IMG/VR virus record: IMGVR_UViG_3300024350_000252
Coordinates: 124,001-188,000 of that record
Strand: one strand, 5' to 3'
DNA length: 64,000 nt
Below are positions 7,352-27,717 of the stretch, in pieces. The stretch's first letter is position 1. Every line of letters starts with the position of its first letter. A program made the position numbers and the translations under genes. The notes below the pieces were generated by a model. That model searched no databases. It saw only the letters and a list, made by a program, of their open reading frames with translations, and was not told where the DNA came from.

Positions 7352-8215
7352 ATGACCACAACTAAAATAAAATACTTAACTAACAAGGACCTACTCAAAG
7401 AAATACACCGAAGCAAAAATACATACTGTTCATATGTAGCACCTGAATTTTCGGACTATGATTTAATACTGCCCAGCTTGGAAAAAATCAATATTCGTAC
7501 TATTGCCGAAGCTAAACGAGTAAGGGCAGCACGTCTATCCAAACAAGCATATGAAAAAGCAGCTCTAACAGATAAAAAAGCTTCTGCTAAAAACTTTGAA
7601 ATCGATTATAAAAAGATACTAAAGACCGATGTTGTTTTTAGGATCGTGTCGTGGGAACATATTCCATTGGCACCTGGTCGGAAAAAGACTGTTAAAAATA
7701 CCGCAGACAGTCACGAAAAAATCAACTTTCCTCCATTCCAACATTGGAAGTTTGATGACAATGATAACCTAATCTGCGTAGGCAAAAGCCACTGGATCGG
7801 TGGTATGGAAAACGGACACTTTAGCAAAGAACACGGACGCATGACTGATAATCTTGCTAGGATGTTTATCAAACTCTGCGAGCGTTACGCTACCAGAGGT
7901 AATGTCAGAGGATATACCTACAACGATGAAATGCGAGGACAAGCGATCTTACAGCTTACTCAAATTGGCCTTCAGTTCGATGAAAGCAAGTCTAATAACC
8001 CTTTCGCTTACTATACTGCTGCCGTTACTAACAGTTTTGTACGGATCATTAACATTGAAAAGCGTAATCAAAATATTAGAGATGACATCCTTGAAATGAA
8101 TGGTATGAATCCCAGTTGGACCAGACAGAACAGCGGTAAATCAACTAGCGCAGGGCCTGTTAGTCCTGTAGTGAGCGACGCAAATTTTAACATGGATTGG
8201 GGCAGCGACGATTGA
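7352..8215 (+). CDS. Late-transcription sigma factor, T4 gp55-like
   Basis: YLTNKDLL at the N-terminus; RGYTYNDEMRGQAIL...FDESKSNNPFAYYTAAVTNSFVRIINIEKRNQNIRD is the gp55 signature; precedes gp47/gp46 as in T4-like phages. Confidence 0.9.
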   Translation: MTTTKIKYLTNKDLLKEIHRSKNTYCSYVAPEFSDYDLILPSLEKINIRTIAEAKRVRAARLSKQAYEKAALTDKKASAKNFEIDYKKILKTDVVFRIVSWEHIPLAPGRKKTVKNTADSHEKINFPPFQHWKFDDNDNLICVGKSHWIGGMENGHFSKEHGRMTDNLARMFIKLCERYATRGNVRGYTYNDEMRGQAILQLTQIGLQFDESKSNNPFAYYTAAVTNSFVRIINIEKRNQNIRDDILEMNGMNPSWTRQNSGKSTSAGPVSPVVSDANFNMDWGSDD

Positions 8216-8259: not shown

Positions 8260-9273
8260 ATGGGATTATTCAACAAAGTCGCTTGTTTCACAGATATCCA
8301 TTTTGGCCTTAAATCAGGTAGCAGGATCCACAACATAGATTGTGAAGATTTTGTCATATGGTTCTGTGAAGAAGCTAAAAAAGCAGGAGCTGAAACTTGT
8401 ATCTTCTTAGGTGACTGGCATCATAACAGGTCAACTACTGATGTCAGCACCATGAACTATACAGTTAGCAACATCGAAAGACTGAATGCTAACTTTGAAA
8501 AAGTCTATTTCATTTTAGGCAATCACGATCTATTCTACAAAGACAAGCGAGAAATTAATTCTATTGAATTCATGCGCCTGTTTCCAAACGTTGTGCCTAT
8601 CAAGGATCCGCTAACATTAGACGGTGTGACTTTTTTACCATGGTTAGTAGGCGATGAATGGCGTACTGTGCCAGATATCAAAAGTCGTTACATTTTTGGA
8701 CACTTTGAATTGCCATTATTCTATATGAACGCTATGGTACAGATGCCTGATCACGGTCAATTACAAAGCAACCATTTCGTTAACCAAGAATATGTGTTTA
8801 GCGGACATTTTCACAAACGTCAAACACAAGGCAATATTACTTATATTGGTAATGCTTTTCCACACAACTACGCAGATGCCGGCGATGATGATCGAGGTAT
8901 GATGTTGTTAGAGTGGGGAGGTGCGCCGGAATATCGAACTTGGCAACAACAGCCTGTTTACAGACACTACAAACTCAGCCGCATCATAGATTCTCCAGAT
9001 ACACTGTTAAAGTCTAAGATGCACTGTCGTGTTACCATAGACGTTCCTATCACTTTCGAAGAAGCTAACTTTATCAAAGAAACTTTTATAAAGCAATATG
9101 ATCTTCGAGAGCTGATGTTGATACCGGAAAAAACAGAAATCGAATCTAGTAATGCTGTTCCTGTGGATCTACAGTTTGAAAGTGTAGACACTATCGTGAT
9201 GAATCAGATAACCAGTATAGATTCCGAAACATATGACAAGAAGCTGCTGTTGGAGATCTACAATAACCTATGA
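8260..9273 (+). CDS. Recombination endonuclease subunit, gp47 (Mre11/SbcD-like)
   Basis: Metallophosphoesterase motifs DIHFG, FLGDWHH, GNHD, GHFE and SGHFH. Confidence 0.95.
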   Translation: MGLFNKVACFTDIHFGLKSGSRIHNIDCEDFVIWFCEEAKKAGAETCIFLGDWHHNRSTTDVSTMNYTVSNIERLNANFEKVYFILGNHDLFYKDKREINSIEFMRLFPNVVPIKDPLTLDGVTFLPWLVGDEWRTVPDIKSRYIFGHFELPLFYMNAMVQMPDHGQLQSNHFVNQEYVFSGHFHKRQTQGNITYIGNAFPHNYADAGDDDRGMMLLEWGGAPEYRTWQQQPVYRHYKLSRIIDSPDTLLKSKMHCRVTIDVPITFEEANFIKETFIKQYDLRELMLIPEKTEIESSNAVPVDLQFESVDTIVMNQITSIDSETYDKKLLLEIYNNL

Positions 9274-11048
9274 TAAAGATCAAGAATTTAACTGTTAAAA
9301 ACTTTATGAGTGTGGGTAATCAAACCCAAGCTGTGGATTTTGACAAGGGTCTGCTAACTTTGGTGCTAGGTGAAAATCTAGATCTCGGCGGCGATGATAT
9401 AGGAGCCCGCAACGGCACAGGTAAAACTACTATCATCAATGGTTTAAGTTATGCTATCTATGGACAAGCACTGACAAATATCAAACGTGATAATCTTATC
9501 AACAAGATCAATAGCAAAAACATGCTAGTTACTATCACGTTTGACAAGGATGGGCAAGAATATCATATTGAGCGCGGACGTAAACCCAATCTACTGAAGT
9601 TTAGCATTAACGGTCAAGAACAAAACCCAGACGATAAAGACGAAAGTCAAGGCGATTCTAGAGAAACACAGAAAGAAATCGAAAAAGTAATAGGTATGAG
9701 CCACGACATGTTCAAACACATCGTGGCTTTGAATACCTATACCGAGCCTTTCCTTAGCATGAAACCCAACGACCAACGTGCTATTATCGAACAGTTGTTA
9801 GGAATCACTATCTTGAGCGAAAAAGCCGAACTGTTAAAAGAAGGCATACGCATTTCTAAAGACATGATCGCTGCCGAAAATACCAAGATAGAAACTATCA
9901 AGGTATCTAATGAGCGCATACAGCAAAGTATCGAAGCATTAGAAAGAAAACTCAAACTATGGCAAACTAACAAAGATAATTCTATCAATGATCTAGAAAA
10001 AGCTATCAAGAAACTTGGTTTGATAGACATCGATCAAGAGATTGAAAATCAAAAAGCACTGGCAGAATGGAGCAAGAACAAAAAAGATCTAGACAGTCTC
10101 AATTCGCAGATGTCTAGACAGTCTGCGACCAAAGATAGAGAACAGAAAAATCTAGATAAACTAGAAAGCGAACTGCTGACTTTAGCTGAACACAAATGTC
10201 ATAGCTGTGGACAAGACATTCATGACGAGAAACACATGGTTATGGTCGAGAAAAAAGCACAGCAAGTAGAAGAAAGCCAAGCTGCCGTTGCTGAATCAGA
10301 AAAACAAATAGCAGAACTACTAGACGCTATCGCAGAAATAGGCGAGCTAGGAGCAGCACCTCTGGTTAATTACGACAATATCGACGATGCTTATAATCAC
10401 AAGACTACTCTTAGCGGTCTAGAAAAAGATCTAGCAGCCAAACAAGCTGAACAAGATCCGTATCAAGAACAAATCGATGAACTTAGAAACACAGCGGTAC
10501 AGGAAATAGACTGGAGCAAGGTCAATGATCTAACCAAAGTCAAAGATCATCAGGAGTTTTTGTACAAATTACTGACTAACAAAGATAGTTTTGTACGTAA
10601 AAAAATCATTGATCAGAATTTAAACTATCTAAACACACGTCTAACTTATTATCTGGATAAGATAGGATTGCCACATACTGTGGAATTCCAAAGCGATCTT
10701 ACTGTGCTTATCACACAACTAGGACAAGATCTAGATTTTGACAATCTAAGCCGAGGAGAACGCAATAGATTGATCTTGAGCTTGAGCTGGGCGTTCCGTG
10801 ATGTGTGGGAAAACCTATATCAAAGCATCAATTTACTGTTTATCGACGAAATGATCGATTCAGGCATGGATGCTAGTGGTGTAGAATCCAGCATAGCTAT
10901 CCTAAAGAAGATGACACGTGAACGCGAGAAGAATGTGTTTTTGATCAGCCATAGAGACGATCTAACCAGCAGGGTTAATCAGGTGCTCAAGGTCATCAAG
11001 GAAAACGGTTTCACTTCATATTCTAACGATGTAGAAATACTACAATGA
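9270..11048 (+). CDS. Recombination ATPase subunit, gp46 (Rad50/SbcC-like)
   Basis: Walker A NGTGKTT, zinc hook CHSC within a coiled coil, signature LSRGE, Walker B LFIDE, H-loop ISH; ATGA overlap with gp47. Confidence 0.95.
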   Translation: MIKIKNLTVKNFMSVGNQTQAVDFDKGLLTLVLGENLDLGGDDIGARNGTGKTTIINGLSYAIYGQALTNIKRDNLINKINSKNMLVTITFDKDGQEYHIERGRKPNLLKFSINGQEQNPDDKDESQGDSRETQKEIEKVIGMSHDMFKHIVALNTYTEPFLSMKPNDQRAIIEQLLGITILSEKAELLKEGIRISKDMIAAENTKIETIKVSNERIQQSIEALERKLKLWQTNKDNSINDLEKAIKKLGLIDIDQEIENQKALAEWSKNKKDLDSLNSQMSRQSATKDREQKNLDKLESELLTLAEHKCHSCGQDIHDEKHMVMVEKKAQQVEESQAAVAESEKQIAELLDAIAEIGELGAAPLVNYDNIDDAYNHKTTLSGLEKDLAAKQAEQDPYQEQIDELRNTAVQEIDWSKVNDLTKVKDHQEFLYKLLTNKDSFVRKKIIDQNLNYLNTRLTYYLDKIGLPHTVEFQSDLTVLITQLGQDLDFDNLSRGERNRLILSLSWAFRDVWENLYQSINLLFIDEMIDSGMDASGVESSIAILKKMTREREKNVFLISHRDDLTSRVNQVLKVIKENGFTSYSNDVEILQ

Positions 11049-11275: not shown

Positions 11276-11710
11276 GTGCTTTGGACATATCAAAATCAAA
11301 TCGTAGAAGAAATACCCGAAGGCTATATTGGCTTTGTTTATCTCATCACGAATCTTACTACCGGCCAGAAGTACATAGGCAAGAAACTAGCACAATTTAA
11401 ACGTACTAAACCTCCTCTCAAAGGCAAAAAACTCAAGCGCAGAAGCACAGTAGAAAGCGATTGGCGCGATTACTGGGGTTCTAGCGACAGGTTAAACGCA
11501 GACGTCCAAGCATTAGGTCCGGAAAACTTCACCAGAGAAATACTTTATTACTGTAAAAGCAAGGCAGAAATGGGCTATTTAGAGGCAAGAGAGCAGTTTG
11601 AACGCCGAGTTTTAGAAACAGATGACTATTATAATGGCATTATAAACGTCAGAGTAGGCGGCTCAAACATACTTAGGCAGCGTCTTTTAGAGCACGAAAA
11701 GGCAAAATAA
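11276..11710 (+). CDS. Stand-alone GIY-YIG family endonuclease (Seg-like)
   Basis: 144 aa; GFVYLITNLTTGQKYIGKK (GIY-YIG motif), YWGSS, FTREIL, YLEAREQF, YYN; GTG start abuts the upstream stop codon. Confidence 0.85.
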   Translation: MLWTYQNQIVEEIPEGYIGFVYLITNLTTGQKYIGKKLAQFKRTKPPLKGKKLKRRSTVESDWRDYWGSSDRLNADVQALGPENFTREILYYCKSKAEMGYLEAREQFERRVLETDDYYNGIINVRVGGSNILRQRLLEHEKAK

Positions 11711-12175
11711 TCGCCAAAAAAACCCGCACCGGTGACTGTTATGGTGCCCAAAATCCGCTCTGATGTGTGGCGGTAAGGAACTCTACCTTGGCGAAGAGGT
11801 ACTCAGCAACTATCCTTTACAGGACGTCGATCGCAAAAAAGCCTGCGGTTTTGCTGTTTGAACGGAGTCAATATAGGCTAAATGAGGGGAGAAAAACCCC
11901 ACGTATACGCTAGTGATAGCAGATTAGCGTATGCCGCCGTCATGATAAGACGGAGCTCGAGGTACCGGATGACCGCCTCTGTAATGCTCTACTGCTGTGT
12001 GACTGTGCTACTCAGATAATGCTCAGTTTTATTTTTAGCCCGGCGACGGGCTAAGTGTGACCATACTATCTAGATAATACTTAAATGCTTCGCATCTAAG
12101 ATTAAATACTATCAGAAGAAATAAAATGTGGCTGAGCGAAAGCGATAGACACAAGTGAGCGTAGCTCACTTCAAA
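11711..12175 (+). ncRNA. Candidate large structured non-coding RNA (family not recognised)
   Basis: About 465 nt with no credible ORF, ~46% GC by hand count against AT-rich spacers elsewhere. At least 11 local helices, e.g. GTATACGCTA 11903-12 / TAGCGTATGC 11925-34; TTAGCCCG-GCGA-CGGGCTAA 12035-54; AAGTGAGC/GCTCACTT 12153-71; GC-GAAA-GC 12136-43. GNRA loops favour + polarity. Ends are approximate. Confidence 0.65.
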
Positions 12176-12179
12176 AAGA

Positions 12180-12186
12180 ATAAATA
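12180..12186 (+). promoter_or_regulatory. T4-type late promoter (ATAAATA)
   Basis: ATAAATA about 27 nt before the 417-aa gene. The same TAAATA core recurs before many structural genes: - strand 1674-80, 7299-7305, 14611-18; + strand 14589-96, 21587-93, 22489-95, 26426-32, 27248-54, 30513-19, 35813-19, 42261-68, 48389-95, 56441-47, 59768-74, 63332-38. T4 gp55 recognises TATAAATA. Confidence 0.7.
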
Positions 12187-12213: not shown

Positions 12214-13467
12214 ATGAGAATCAATGATATCTTAATCGAATCACAGGTCAAAGAAGCACCACAAGGCATGCTCAAACGAGCTGGACTTGGTATAATGAGT
12301 AAATTTGGCAGTGATAAAGCTGCTGGTAAACTAGATACTGGTGCTATCGCTAATGCTCTAATGAGAGATTTTAACAGATTCCTTGGTGCTACTAAGCTAG
12401 AACCTGATGCTGATGCTGTACTACGTTTCCTACAAAGCAAAGGTTATCCATCTGATGGCGCTAAGATGGTTTTAGACAAAGAAGCTAACTCTGCTACTGG
12501 TAACAGAGCTCCGAAAGGTCCTATGGGCGGTGGCATCATGGGCAAGATGAAAGGCGCTGCTGGCTCTTTAGGCAACAGGCTAAAAGCTAATCCTGAACAG
12601 CCACAAGACAGGATTGAGCCAACAGGAGACGACGATGCGACAGCTACAGCTCAACCTAGCGCATCACAAGCACAACCAACAGCACAACCAACAGCAACAG
12701 CACAACCAACAGCAGCAGCACAACCAACAACAAAACCTAGCGCATCACAAACACAAACGCCAGCGCAACAGAACACTAATAAAATTGATAAAAAAGCACG
12801 TAAAGCCGCAGGTAAAGCTGCTATGGCTACACAGCAGGCTGCAGCTGACGCTCAGAACAAACCTGGATGGGCACGGACCGCTGATGATAAGATAAGAATA
12901 CAGGCCGCAAAAGGTGTTAATGCTAATGCTGCCGGATCTTTTAAGTCAGGAGCAGCTAAAATCCGTTCTAAAGGTCTAAACATGAGCATGTACACTGAAG
13001 AAGCTCTTCCACAAGCTACACTAGACAAAGCATTCATGCAAGCTGCTCATGATGCTGCCAAGATGGGCTATGGACTAGATCCAAACACAGGTAATATCGT
13101 TGACCAAGGTGGTGCCGCACAAGGTCCTATGGGTGGAGGCAATCAAGGTGCTGCCCAGGGCGGTGGCAGTGCTTGGGACAGTTTTAAACAAGGTGTCGCT
13201 GGAGGTCTAACTGGACAGCAAGCAGGCGATGCTTCTGGTGGCGGACAAAGCGGTATACAAGGTTCGCTAAACGTCAATGCGTTAACACAGCTATTGCCTA
13301 ATGTCAATCCAGCTCAATTAAAAATGGCTGTGAGCACGGTCAAGAGCGGTGGACAGTTAAGTAGGACACATCAAGCAGTGCTAGCATCTGCTATGATCGA
13401 TCTGATGAAAGCTGATCCTGCTACTACACAAAAAGCATTCACGCTGTTAAAACGAATACAGGCTTAA
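12214..13467 (+). CDS. Hypothetical low-complexity late protein (possible internal head protein)
   Basis: 417 aa, A/Q/G-rich with AQPT repeats; preceded by a late promoter; N-terminus MRINDILIE. Confidence 0.75.
   Translation: MRINDILIESQVKEAPQGMLKRAGLGIMSKFGSDKAAGKLDTGAIANALMRDFNRFLGATKLEPDADAVLRFLQSKGYPSDGAKMVLDKEANSATGNRAPKGPMGGGIMGKMKGAAGSLGNRLKANPEQPQDRIEPTGDDDATATAQPSASQAQPTAQPTATAQPTAAAQPTTKPSASQTQTPAQQNTNKIDKKARKAAGKAAMATQQAAADAQNKPGWARTADDKIRIQAAKGVNANAAGSFKSGAAKIRSKGLNMSMYTEEALPQATLDKAFMQAAHDAAKMGYGLDPNTGNIVDQGGAAQGPMGGGNQGAAQGGGSAWDSFKQGVAGGLTGQQAGDASGGGQSGIQGSLNVNALTQLLPNVNPAQLKMAVSTVKSGGQLSRTHQAVLASAMIDLMKADPATTQKAFTLLKRIQA
12653..12750 (+). repeat. Coding tandem repeat (AQPT/ASQ units)
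   Basis: GCACAACCAACA units repeated, flanked by a 17-nt direct repeat AACCTAGCGCATCACAA at 12653-69 and 12734-50. Confidence 0.85.
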
Positions 13468-13700: not shown

Positions 13701-14578
13701 TCCGAGCTGTCCATGTTAAGATCTACGGACCATTCGTGCTCGCATTTGGAACATTTGGCTTTAAATGAGCTCATAGTTCCGCTTTCTTTGCTTTTGTTTA
13801 CAGCATCAGTGATAGATTGGAATATAGATTTATCAGCGTTGGTTAAAAATTCTCTGATAAACTCTGGATTATCTGTGCTACCTTCTGTACTTTCGATCTT
13901 ACTAATACAATTAACAGCAGAATCGATAGTCAAATCAGTGAGCTTGACAAAACTTTCTTGGAACATCCTAACTTTTTCCTGTTCCTCGATACGATCATCA
14001 TTGATGATAGAAAATATACGCTGGTGTTCAAATGCTTTTAAGCTGACTTTGGTCAATTGATTGTAGTCCATAGGACGTAGATGAACCAACATACTATCGC
14101 CTATCTCGACAGTTTTATTGAAATTTACTTTGTTAAGACTATCTAACACATTCCTTAGATCAACAGCTAGATCATTTACAGTTTCGCATTTAGGACAACC
14201 TGCGGTGACATCCATTTCTTCGCCGTAGGTAGCGATACGGATAGCTACTAAGATAGCATCAACATCTAAGCTAGGCACTGCCCAACCATCTTTGATGTTA
14301 GGTACACAGCTACGTATAACTTCTACAGTAGCAGCACCGTTCATCAGCGCATCTGGTGTTTTAAACAACAGTTCATCTCGAGCTGTCATAGCAAACACAG
14401 GATACTCGTTGTTGATAGTTTTTTCTAAAGCACCTTCTGGGTAAAACTCTCCTTTGCTAGGCAGCGAAATCCAAATTTTGGGCTGTCGAAAAAATGCTGC
14501 TAGAGGATTTTTATCTGTTTTCACAGCAGGTGCTGGCTGCGCAGATGTTGGGTTTAAGTTGTTGATAAATTCTGCCAT
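13673..14578 (-). CDS. Baseplate hub assembly / tail assembly chaperone, T4 gp26-like
   Basis: 301 aa; LPSKGEFY, MTARDELLFKTPDALMNG, DVDAILVAIRIATYGE, and two CxxC pairs (CPKC, CSKC), typical of gp26-like proteins. Confidence 0.8.
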   Translation of the reverse strand: MAEFINNLNPTSAQPAPAVKTDKNPLAAFFRQPKIWISLPSKGEFYPEGALEKTINNEYPVFAMTARDELLFKTPDALMNGAATVEVIRSCVPNIKDGWAVPSLDVDAILVAIRIATYGEEMDVTAGCPKCETVNDLAVDLRNVLDSLNKVNFNKTVEIGDSMLVHLRPMDYNQLTKVSLKAFEHQRIFSIINDDRIEEQEKVRMFQESFVKLTDLTIDSAVNCISKIESTEGSTDNPEFIREFLTNADKSIFQSITDAVNKSKESGTMSSFKAKCSKCEHEWSVDLNMDSSDFFGSGFRR

Positions 14579-27251: not shown

Positions 27252-27321
27252 ATAAAGTATCTAAGTTTATTATGCGGCACCCACCGCGTAGACCTAGAAC
27301 GTCAACATAAGGAGAAAACAA

Positions 27322-27717
27322 ATGGGACGTCCAGTAAAAAAGATTAATTTTGGTACAGCGGCAGGATCAGATTCAGGTATTTTGGTATCTGCTATGAAAA
27401 CTAGCACAGCTCGTACTAGCTACATCGTAGCACAACGTGGTTCAAACAAATACGATGTATACAATGCTACAGACGGTACATTCCGTGTAACACTAGCAGA
27501 AGGTACAAGTTTTGCTGCCGACACAGCAGGAACAGCAGTCATGGTAGGTTACAGAGATCCGGGTAATGATGCTACAAGAGTTACTATAAAGAAACTAACA
27601 GCTCGCATCATGACAGGTTTTGATGGCACACGCTACAGATGGGCACTAGTAAATGATTCATCATCTGACTACATCCAATTGTATGTCAAGGCTAACGGTA
27701 CAACCGACTACGTATAA
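27322..27717 (+). CDS. Hypothetical virion protein
   Basis: 131 aa; strong SD AAGGAG; late promoter at 27248. Confidence 0.75.
   Translation: MGRPVKKINFGTAAGSDSGILVSAMKTSTARTSYIVAQRGSNKYDVYNATDGTFRVTLAEGTSFAADTAGTAVMVGYRDPGNDATRVTIKKLTARIMTGFDGTRYRWALVNDSSSDYIQLYVKANGTTDYV

Follow-up and report, generated by a model that had tools for sequence, protein, structure and literature searches.

Comparison of related viral and bacterial loci shows that the gapped direct repeat at positions 11997-12078 of the window, which is the whole 64,000-nt stretch of DNA analysed here, forms two conserved, paired modules within the 3' domain of a structured noncoding RNA of ~450 nt. Each module ends in a short purine-rich box, here called E, and the same comparison shows that the two E boxes are constrained to be identical within a genome while varying between lineages.

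The repeat consists of GTGTGAC-tgtg-CTA-ctc-AGATAAT at 11997-12020 (+) and GTGTGAC-cata-CTA-tct-AGATAAT at 12055-12078 (+), exactly as an earlier note on this DNA had described it, and the start-to-start distance of the two copies is 58 nt. Copy 1 is composed of the box GUGUGAC (11997-12003), a variable linker (12004-12010), a fixed CUC (12011-12013) and E1, AGAUAAU (12014-12020), and copy 2 of the box GUGUGAC (12055-12061), a variable linker (12062-12068), a fixed UCU (12069-12071) and E2, AGAUAAU (12072-12078), all on the + strand. Between the copies lies a conserved 8-bp hairpin with a GCGA loop (12035-12054, +), which carries compensatory changes, one pair changing from A-U to U-A to G-C among relatives. 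On the 3' side of copy 2 there is a second hairpin, ATGC-TTC-GCAT (12085-12095, +, with outer pairs 12080-83/12097-12100), in which 4/4 pairs covary and 78% of cells are paired over 12080-12100, a gappy stretch of alignment A2, whose 64 sequences were picked with an exact-repeat filter. Both hairpins, which the earlier note had also pointed out, are real and both covary.

When the gapped pattern was searched with up to three mismatches, the two copies were the only matches in the window, compared with 0.22 expected from shuffles, and 0/100 shuffled windows held two matches. They are also the sole copies in the whole 238-kb virus record under both strict and relaxed patterns, and exact single-copy matches in viral contigs numbered nine, approximately the chance number for 17 specified bases. 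The repeat is far beyond chance, since both copies are retained in relatives whose downstream protein shows just 46-72% identity. In close relatives the repeat is thus neither absent nor randomised; copy number is constant at two, with a copy-to-copy spacing of 47-61 nt, except in locus L100 (IMGVR_UViG_3300008113_000659), where copy 1 and the central hairpin are lost and copy 2 alone remains. A partial third copy had been suspected at 12106-12116; it amounts to an 8-nt match (ATACTATC) that is not kept in relatives and is taken as chance. The blocks that had looked fixed in the window behave differently from each other across homologues: GUGUGAC is near-invariant, the middle CTA is really NNA, and AGATAAT is only one among the many forms that different lineages carry. 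The mini-array of repeat-plus-hairpin units that had been proposed is not supported, because there are always two copies (one in L100), the hairpins are non-homologous, and the CUC/UCU differences between the copies are fixed.

By gene content, the source window belongs to a T4-like phage. The gene of the late sigma factor gp55 (7352-8215) is followed by the genes of gp47 and gp46 (8260-11048), then by an ORF for a basic 76-aa protein and by a gene for a SegE-like GIY-YIG nuclease of 144 aa (11276-11710, +; Pfam PF19835, E 1.9e-35). The repeat sits in the 503-nt gap between this nuclease gene and a late ORF of 417 aa with unassigned function (12214-13467, +), which lies downstream of the RNA and is followed in the window by a convergent baseplate-hub gene. 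The 417-aa ORF does not always stand beside the RNA; many relatives have the convergent baseplate-hub gene directly after the RNA. A T4-type late-promoter-like box, ATAAATA (12180-12186, +), stands 27 nt upstream of the ATG of the 417-aa ORF, and ATAAAT recurs at the corresponding place in many relatives. From its sequence and place, this box may be read as a putative late promoter, and it likely marks the 3' limit of the RNA region.

The GIY-YIG gene ends ~10 nt 5' of the RNA, and in almost every related phage locus (>100) it occupies this upstream position in conserved synteny. Because the RNA lies directly behind the nuclease gene on the + strand, it is probably transcribed together with it. 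At the exact place of the GIY-YIG gene, three loci carry a PDDEXK_15 nuclease of 173 aa (L118:3963-4484; L114:10497-11018, -; L151:9985-10506, -), which, judged from gene position, is a non-homologous swap of one small nuclease for another. Relatives of the 144-aa GIY-YIG protein are found in 465 cultured phage records, mostly T4-like phages of Synechococcus and Prochlorococcus, and are often labelled 'NAD synthetase', which looks like an annotation error; no sequence relative of the protein was found in the PDB. That the protein is so widespread, and in conserved synteny, suggests that it is a core nuclease and not a homing endonuclease of sporadic occurrence. There is no tRNA gene in the window. 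Elsewhere in the window, a freshwater-2 RNA (RF02980) occurs at 27253-27324 (+), with 53.8 bits against a cut-off of 49.9, just upstream of an ORF starting at 27322, and it contains no complement to the window's E box. Further downstream, 30536-56104 (+) holds four very long consecutive ORFs of 1751, 1877, 2022 and 2560 aa, which is unusual for a T4-like structural region.

The 5' domain of the RNA is Polynucleobacter-1 RNA (RF01718) at 11721-11859 (+), a full-length model match with 68.1 bits against a gathering score of 37. It is the covariance-model score that places this domain in RF01718, and the repeat lies outside the model, 138 nt downstream. The 3' extension of the same RNA (11860-12171, +) holds the twin boxes, and no description of it was found in Rfam or in the literature searched. 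It begins with hairpins at 11886-11900 and 11903-11934, followed by a stem at 11938-41/11949-52 and by nested stems at 11953-56/11986-89, 11959-62/11976-79 and 11966-68/11973-75, and it ends with two 3'-terminal hairpins at 12128-12152 and 12153-12171, all on the + strand. In addition, a pseudoknot joins the loop AGCAG (11918-11922) to CTGCT (11992-11996, +), immediately 5' of copy 1.

The best-supported helices in A2 are this pseudoknot, with 98.6% of cells paired and both-side changes in 5/5 pairs, the nested stems at 11953-11989, and the hairpin at 12153-12171, with 97.4% of cells paired. Over all A2 helices, 83.5% of cells pair, compared with 72.4% in column shuffles and 37-44% in slid-partner controls, and compensatory changes on both sides are seen in 42 pairs. 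The G-U pairs in the covarying helices fit RNA of the + strand only. Viral contigs were scanned with gp46, with the downstream protein, and with the 18-nt core of the Rfam motif, which gave >140 core-bearing loci. The GIY-YIG gene ends ~100 nt 5' of the core in nearly all of these loci, even where other genes part it from gp46, and the downstream neighbour of the RNA varies. A downstream anchor was present ~140-180 nt past the core in 123/130 Polynucleobacter-1 core loci, from which it follows that the RNA is much longer than the Rfam model, and the covarying helices around the repeat make the repeat an internal part of the ~450-nt structured RNA.

It has been reported by Weinberg et al. (2010) that the Polynucleobacter-1 motif lies downstream of the conserved gene family GOS11034, which was likened to PSSM2_218 of cyanophage P-SSM2, and that the motif occurs in Polynucleobacter and freshwater samples, with no example in purified phage (PMC2864571). 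The present RNA matches that family over its 5' 139 nt (68 bits) and likewise occurs in Polynucleobacter and fresh water. In the phages it lies behind a conserved small gene, the GIY-YIG gene, which may correspond to GOS11034, and the bacterial copies have a divergent DUF6641 gene instead. The family model, however, ends at 11859, so that the repeat and ~310 nt of covarying structure are outside it. Unlike in the 2010 description, the RNA is found here on T4-like viral contigs; in cultured phage records it is still not found, with no blastn match in 50,697 phage records, and it is absent from Methylophilales phage Melnitz, the closest cultured phage by the GIY-YIG protein (65%).

Across ~100 distinct sequences, the order of parts in each module is GUGUGAC, 6-9 variable letters, CUC in copy 1 or UCU in copy 2, and a purine-rich E of 7-9 nt, where CUC and UCU are invariant columns in the phages and are retained in the bacteria. 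In the main clade, E takes the form of 14 distinct 7-mers, namely AGATAAT (31 sequences), GGATAAT (17), GGATGAA (8), GGATGAT (8) and ten rarer ones, and in divergent clades it is GGTCAAGT, GTGTCAAGT, AGTCAAG, AGACAAG or AGGATAAT. For the count of identity, sites were chosen by the ACTC and ATCT anchors alone, blind to E; this count, which covers only sequences with both anchors, is free of the exact-repeat bias of A2. Over 7 nt, E1 equals E2 in 82/84 phage sequences chosen in this way, and of the two exceptions one differs at a single letter and the other is mis-anchored. When E2 was dealt to other sequences, agreement was 20% in the phage set and 37% in the bacterial set. On a tree built without the E columns, at least 10, 4, 7 and 8 changes are required at E positions 1, 2, 5 and 7, respectively, and whole E types require at least 22 changes, every one of which is mirrored in the other copy (A2 rows). 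Identity fades on the 5' side of CUC/UCU, where 62, 54 and 47 of 64 sequences agree at the three preceding letters. Where the modules differ in a fixed way, the change is always a transition, namely C/U, U/C and C/U before E and G/A after it.

The RNA is not confined to phages. In a prokaryote scan with one genome per species, the full-length RNA with its twin boxes was found in chromosomes of Polynucleobacter isolates and related MAGs; isolates that carry it include Polynucleobacter sp. MWH-HuK1 and P. rarus. It is present in 10/101 Polynucleobacter species genomes searched and is thus accessory in this genus. The bacterial E is AGCGAAAG, AGAGAAAG or GGAGAAA, alike in both copies, with E1 equal to E2 in 9/12 sequences and different at one letter in 3/12. 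A DUF6641 gene lies divergently upstream of the RNA in 6/6 bacterial loci, and in 3/6 a tyrosine recombinase of 188 aa is encoded 150-230 nt downstream, comprising little beyond the tyrosine-recombinase catalytic domain (L249, L239, L238; L253:8287-8853, -). The GIY-YIG and 76-aa proteins are both absent from the bacterial loci, and neither DUF6641 nor an integrase was found in the phage record.

In one isolate the RNA is present twice, with 18 kb between the copies, in a series of islands that tRNA-3'-end repeats delimit. These tandem islands (L252/L253, G002:C1:396000-424000) contain at least six tRNA 3'-end-like repeats of 23-46 nt that include TCGATTCCGCCCCGGGCCACCA, and ARAGORN found no intact tRNA in the 28 kb; their cargo comprises metal-related DUFs, a transporter, a restriction-enzyme fragment, and a 424-aa integrase. 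The idea that E is the att core of the bacterial islands was rejected, as the island repeats are tRNA 3' ends unrelated to E. Because the RNA occurs on two kinds of mobile DNA with different protein neighbours, the twin boxes are more likely to function for the RNA itself, or for a partner that is widely available, than for the adjacent phage nuclease.

Since E drifts between lineages yet stays identical in both modules, and no covarying complement occurs in the RNA, we favour, tentatively and at somewhat below an even chance, the reading that the E boxes are twin recognition sites of one trans-acting partner, most simply a base-pairing nucleic acid. The modules flank the conserved GC hairpin and follow the pseudoknot; on this reading, both E boxes would be read by the same partner. 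Two points make a base-pairing partner attractive: the boxes show the free variation of guide-like sequences, and the modules differ at their fixed positions by transitions alone, so that a single strand of the form 5'-U-(complement of E)-GGG-U could pair with either module through G-U wobbles. As regards the earlier note, its RNA-level reading holds in that the repeat lies inside a strongly covarying + strand RNA, and repeated binding sites are the best reading of the twin boxes. Counting against a partner in trans, the divergent-clade E GUCAAGU is Watson-Crick complementary to its own GUGUGAC box, which means that E may instead pair locally with GUGUGAC and have a structural role.

The search for a complement of E in cis gave no covarying site in a 7-mer search allowing G-U, none by mutual information between the E columns and all columns of the whole-RNA alignment, and none in a 5- to 7-mer Watson-Crick search with foreign E types as controls. 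Each linker has complementarity of a lineage-specific kind, both to the other linker and to the letters that follow E1. For the candidate linker helices v1/p1, v1/v2 and p1/v2, 50%, 63% and 58% of cells are paired, respectively, and in a permutation test the z scores reached only -2.7 to -4.1; with pairing of 50-63% and none consistent across the alignment, these helices were rejected. Minimum-energy folds often pair part of E and disagree on whether E is paired. Near E itself, AUCU of copy 2 and the first four E letters (xGAU), at 12069-12076, are self-complementary in most lineages (U-A or U-G at x), which could allow RNA dimerisation or pairing of E1 with AUCU of copy 2; the GCAU and GAAU lineages break this self-complementarity with no compensation.

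Beyond the RNA, neither the complement of a genome's own E nor extra copies of it are enriched within ~10 kb, and the predicted common partner has two matches in the 238-kb genome, both in ORFs and far from the window. A 13-mer, GATATTATTTGGG, occurs twice, 1.2 kb apart, in two ORFs (G000:C1:13171-13183 and 14366-14378; L254:772-784 and 1967-1979) and happens to match the wobble partner predicted for the twin boxes; this repetition probably reflects a shared protein motif. Within gene 46, TATTATCTGGAT at 10647-10658 is complementary to copy 2 at 12/12 positions with one G-U, in L017 the corresponding complement is a perfect 12-mer, and part of the site is palindromic (TTATC-NN-GATAA). This site was rejected as the partner, since it encodes a conserved motif (YYLDK) and fails to change with E from lineage to lineage.

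The main rival, a purely intramolecular role in which E pairs, mostly non-canonically, with its own GUGUGAC or the E strands contact each other, is considered rather unlikely. The fold would contain either two like stem-loops (G-U, U-A, G.A, U.U, G.A, A.G, C-x) or, for example, parallel homo-base pairing, and its symmetry would keep the boxes identical. The complementary GUGUGAC/GUCAAGU of the divergent clades agrees with this, as do L147, L151 and L190, which turn G.A and U.U positions into G-C and U-A or U-G; in addition, the identity pattern (A/A, G/G, U/U) is what homo-pairs would give, and neither the flanks nor the genome yielded a trans partner. However, if E pairs with an invariant box, the joint change of E1 and E2 is left unexplained, folding shows no consistent local structure, and to our knowledge long parallel homo-duplexes do not occur in natural RNAs. 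Alternatively, the E boxes could be twin binding sites for a homodimeric or two-copy protein of phage or host that reads E directly, which we regard as quite unlikely. Two like sites ~50-60 nt apart would suit a dimer, and genes for a small nuclease and for the basic 76-aa protein lie just upstream, the two proteins that the earlier note had suggested for binding assays. Nevertheless, no column of the GIY-YIG or 76-aa protein tracks E, the best mutual information being 0.2-0.38 bits against an entropy of 0.6-1.0 bits; loci with PDDEXK in place of GIY-YIG leave the boxes unchanged, L118 among them still carrying the common AGATAAT; and bacterial copies exist without either protein. Moreover, the repeated A/G flips between very close relatives would demand equally frequent changes in specificity.

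It was also considered that a mutational mechanism, templated correction or gene conversion between the copies, rather than selection, keeps the boxes identical, and this is highly improbable. The deletion between the copies in L100 and the avid recombination of T4-like phages speak for such a process, but the identical patches of 7-9 nt are too short for homologous conversion, the flanking differences (CUC/UCU, linkers) are never erased, and the same rule holds in bacterial chromosomes. Barely credible is a role at the DNA level, as origin iterons, tandem promoters or operators. Like iterons of the T4 oriE type, the copies are direct repeats beside replication and recombination genes (46 and 47 adjoin the locus), and iterons are alike within and different between replicons, as E is; AGATAAT also resembles a -10 hexamer. 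Against the origin proposed in the earlier note, the usual three or more phased copies of iterons are replaced here by two (one in L100) at a variable spacing of 47-61 nt, the surrounding sequence covaries as + strand RNA, and the element also occurs on bacterial chromosomal islands. The turning point of the cumulative GC skew falls at ~7.4 kb, at the switch of gene direction, rather than at 12 kb, which counts only weakly against an origin because skew in such phages follows transcription. A sigma-70 or T4 middle promoter was rejected because the boxes are 11 nt apart with no -35 at a usable distance, a promoter-like site is absent at the repeats, and the pattern does not recur in the 238 kb; E variants such as GGATGAA, AGCAGAA and GGTCAAGT are unlike a -10 box.

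Other known repeat-bearing elements were compared with the locus. A CRISPR mini-array was rejected since the two repeats differ in their middles and what would be the 'spacer' is a hairpin that is conserved and covaries, and the repeats of type III toxin-antitoxin systems were rejected since the copies are neither tandem nor fully identical and the neighbours have DNA-nuclease folds. A box C/D-like k-turn or k-loop has tandem sheared G.A pairs that join a UGA-type box to a GAUGA-type box, and an L7Ae-type protein binds it; here, GUGUGAC opposite xGAUyA could give G.A, A.G and U.U pairs, but the E variants GCAU, GAAU and GUCAAGU depart from the consensus. Ribosomal bypass, with a matched codon and a stop, does not fit a region that has no conserved ORF, lacks the stop in divergent clades, and covaries as RNA. 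GOLLD and ROOL are phage- or island-linked RNAs of several hundred nt with GNRA loops and pseudoknots, whose function is not known. The RNA described here is smaller and gave no Rfam match to either family, and we know of no twin identical boxes in GOLLD or ROOL.

The bridge or seek RNAs of IS110/IS1111 elements are structured, are encoded beside an enzyme that cuts and joins DNA, and contain two like modules with lineage-variable short sequences, and the two sites of these guide RNAs must share a common core. The likeness of the present RNA to them, twin modules with variable short boxes beside nuclease or recombinase genes, is a resemblance only. Unlike at IS110, there is no DEDD/serine recombinase, the neighbours being GIY-YIG or PDDEXK in phages and DUF6641 and the 188-aa tyrosine recombinase in bacteria, and the whole variable box, not just a 2-nt core, is identical in both modules. 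A bridge RNA of the IS110 type was rejected, as there is no such recombinase nearby and a search of the flanks and of the genome gave no complementary DNA sites. Very unlikely, in our estimate, is the broader idea that the RNA is a programmable two-site guide whose modules would hold DNA or RNA, with the shared E as the core at which strands would be cut or exchanged, in phages by the small nuclease encoded next to the RNA and on bacterial islands by the domain-poor 188-aa tyrosine recombinase. If true, such a system would resemble that of the bridge RNAs while relying on other enzymes, and the identity of the boxes irrespective of their sequence would be explained.

With these results, a 141-nt orphan Rfam motif becomes part of a much larger pseudoknotted RNA, which is common to a wide clade of uncultured T4-like freshwater phages and to accessory islands of Polynucleobacter. 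The evolutionary signature of the boxes, mutually identical though their sequence is free to change, is unusual and usually marks a specific molecular interaction. The identical boxes therefore offer a handle for finding the partner and the function of the RNA, and the isolates that carry it make bench tests possible. Should the partner prove to be DNA, read jointly with the nucleases or the recombinase encoded nearby, the RNA would represent a new kind of guide RNA; otherwise, what stands is a new, well-supported domain of a large structured RNA.
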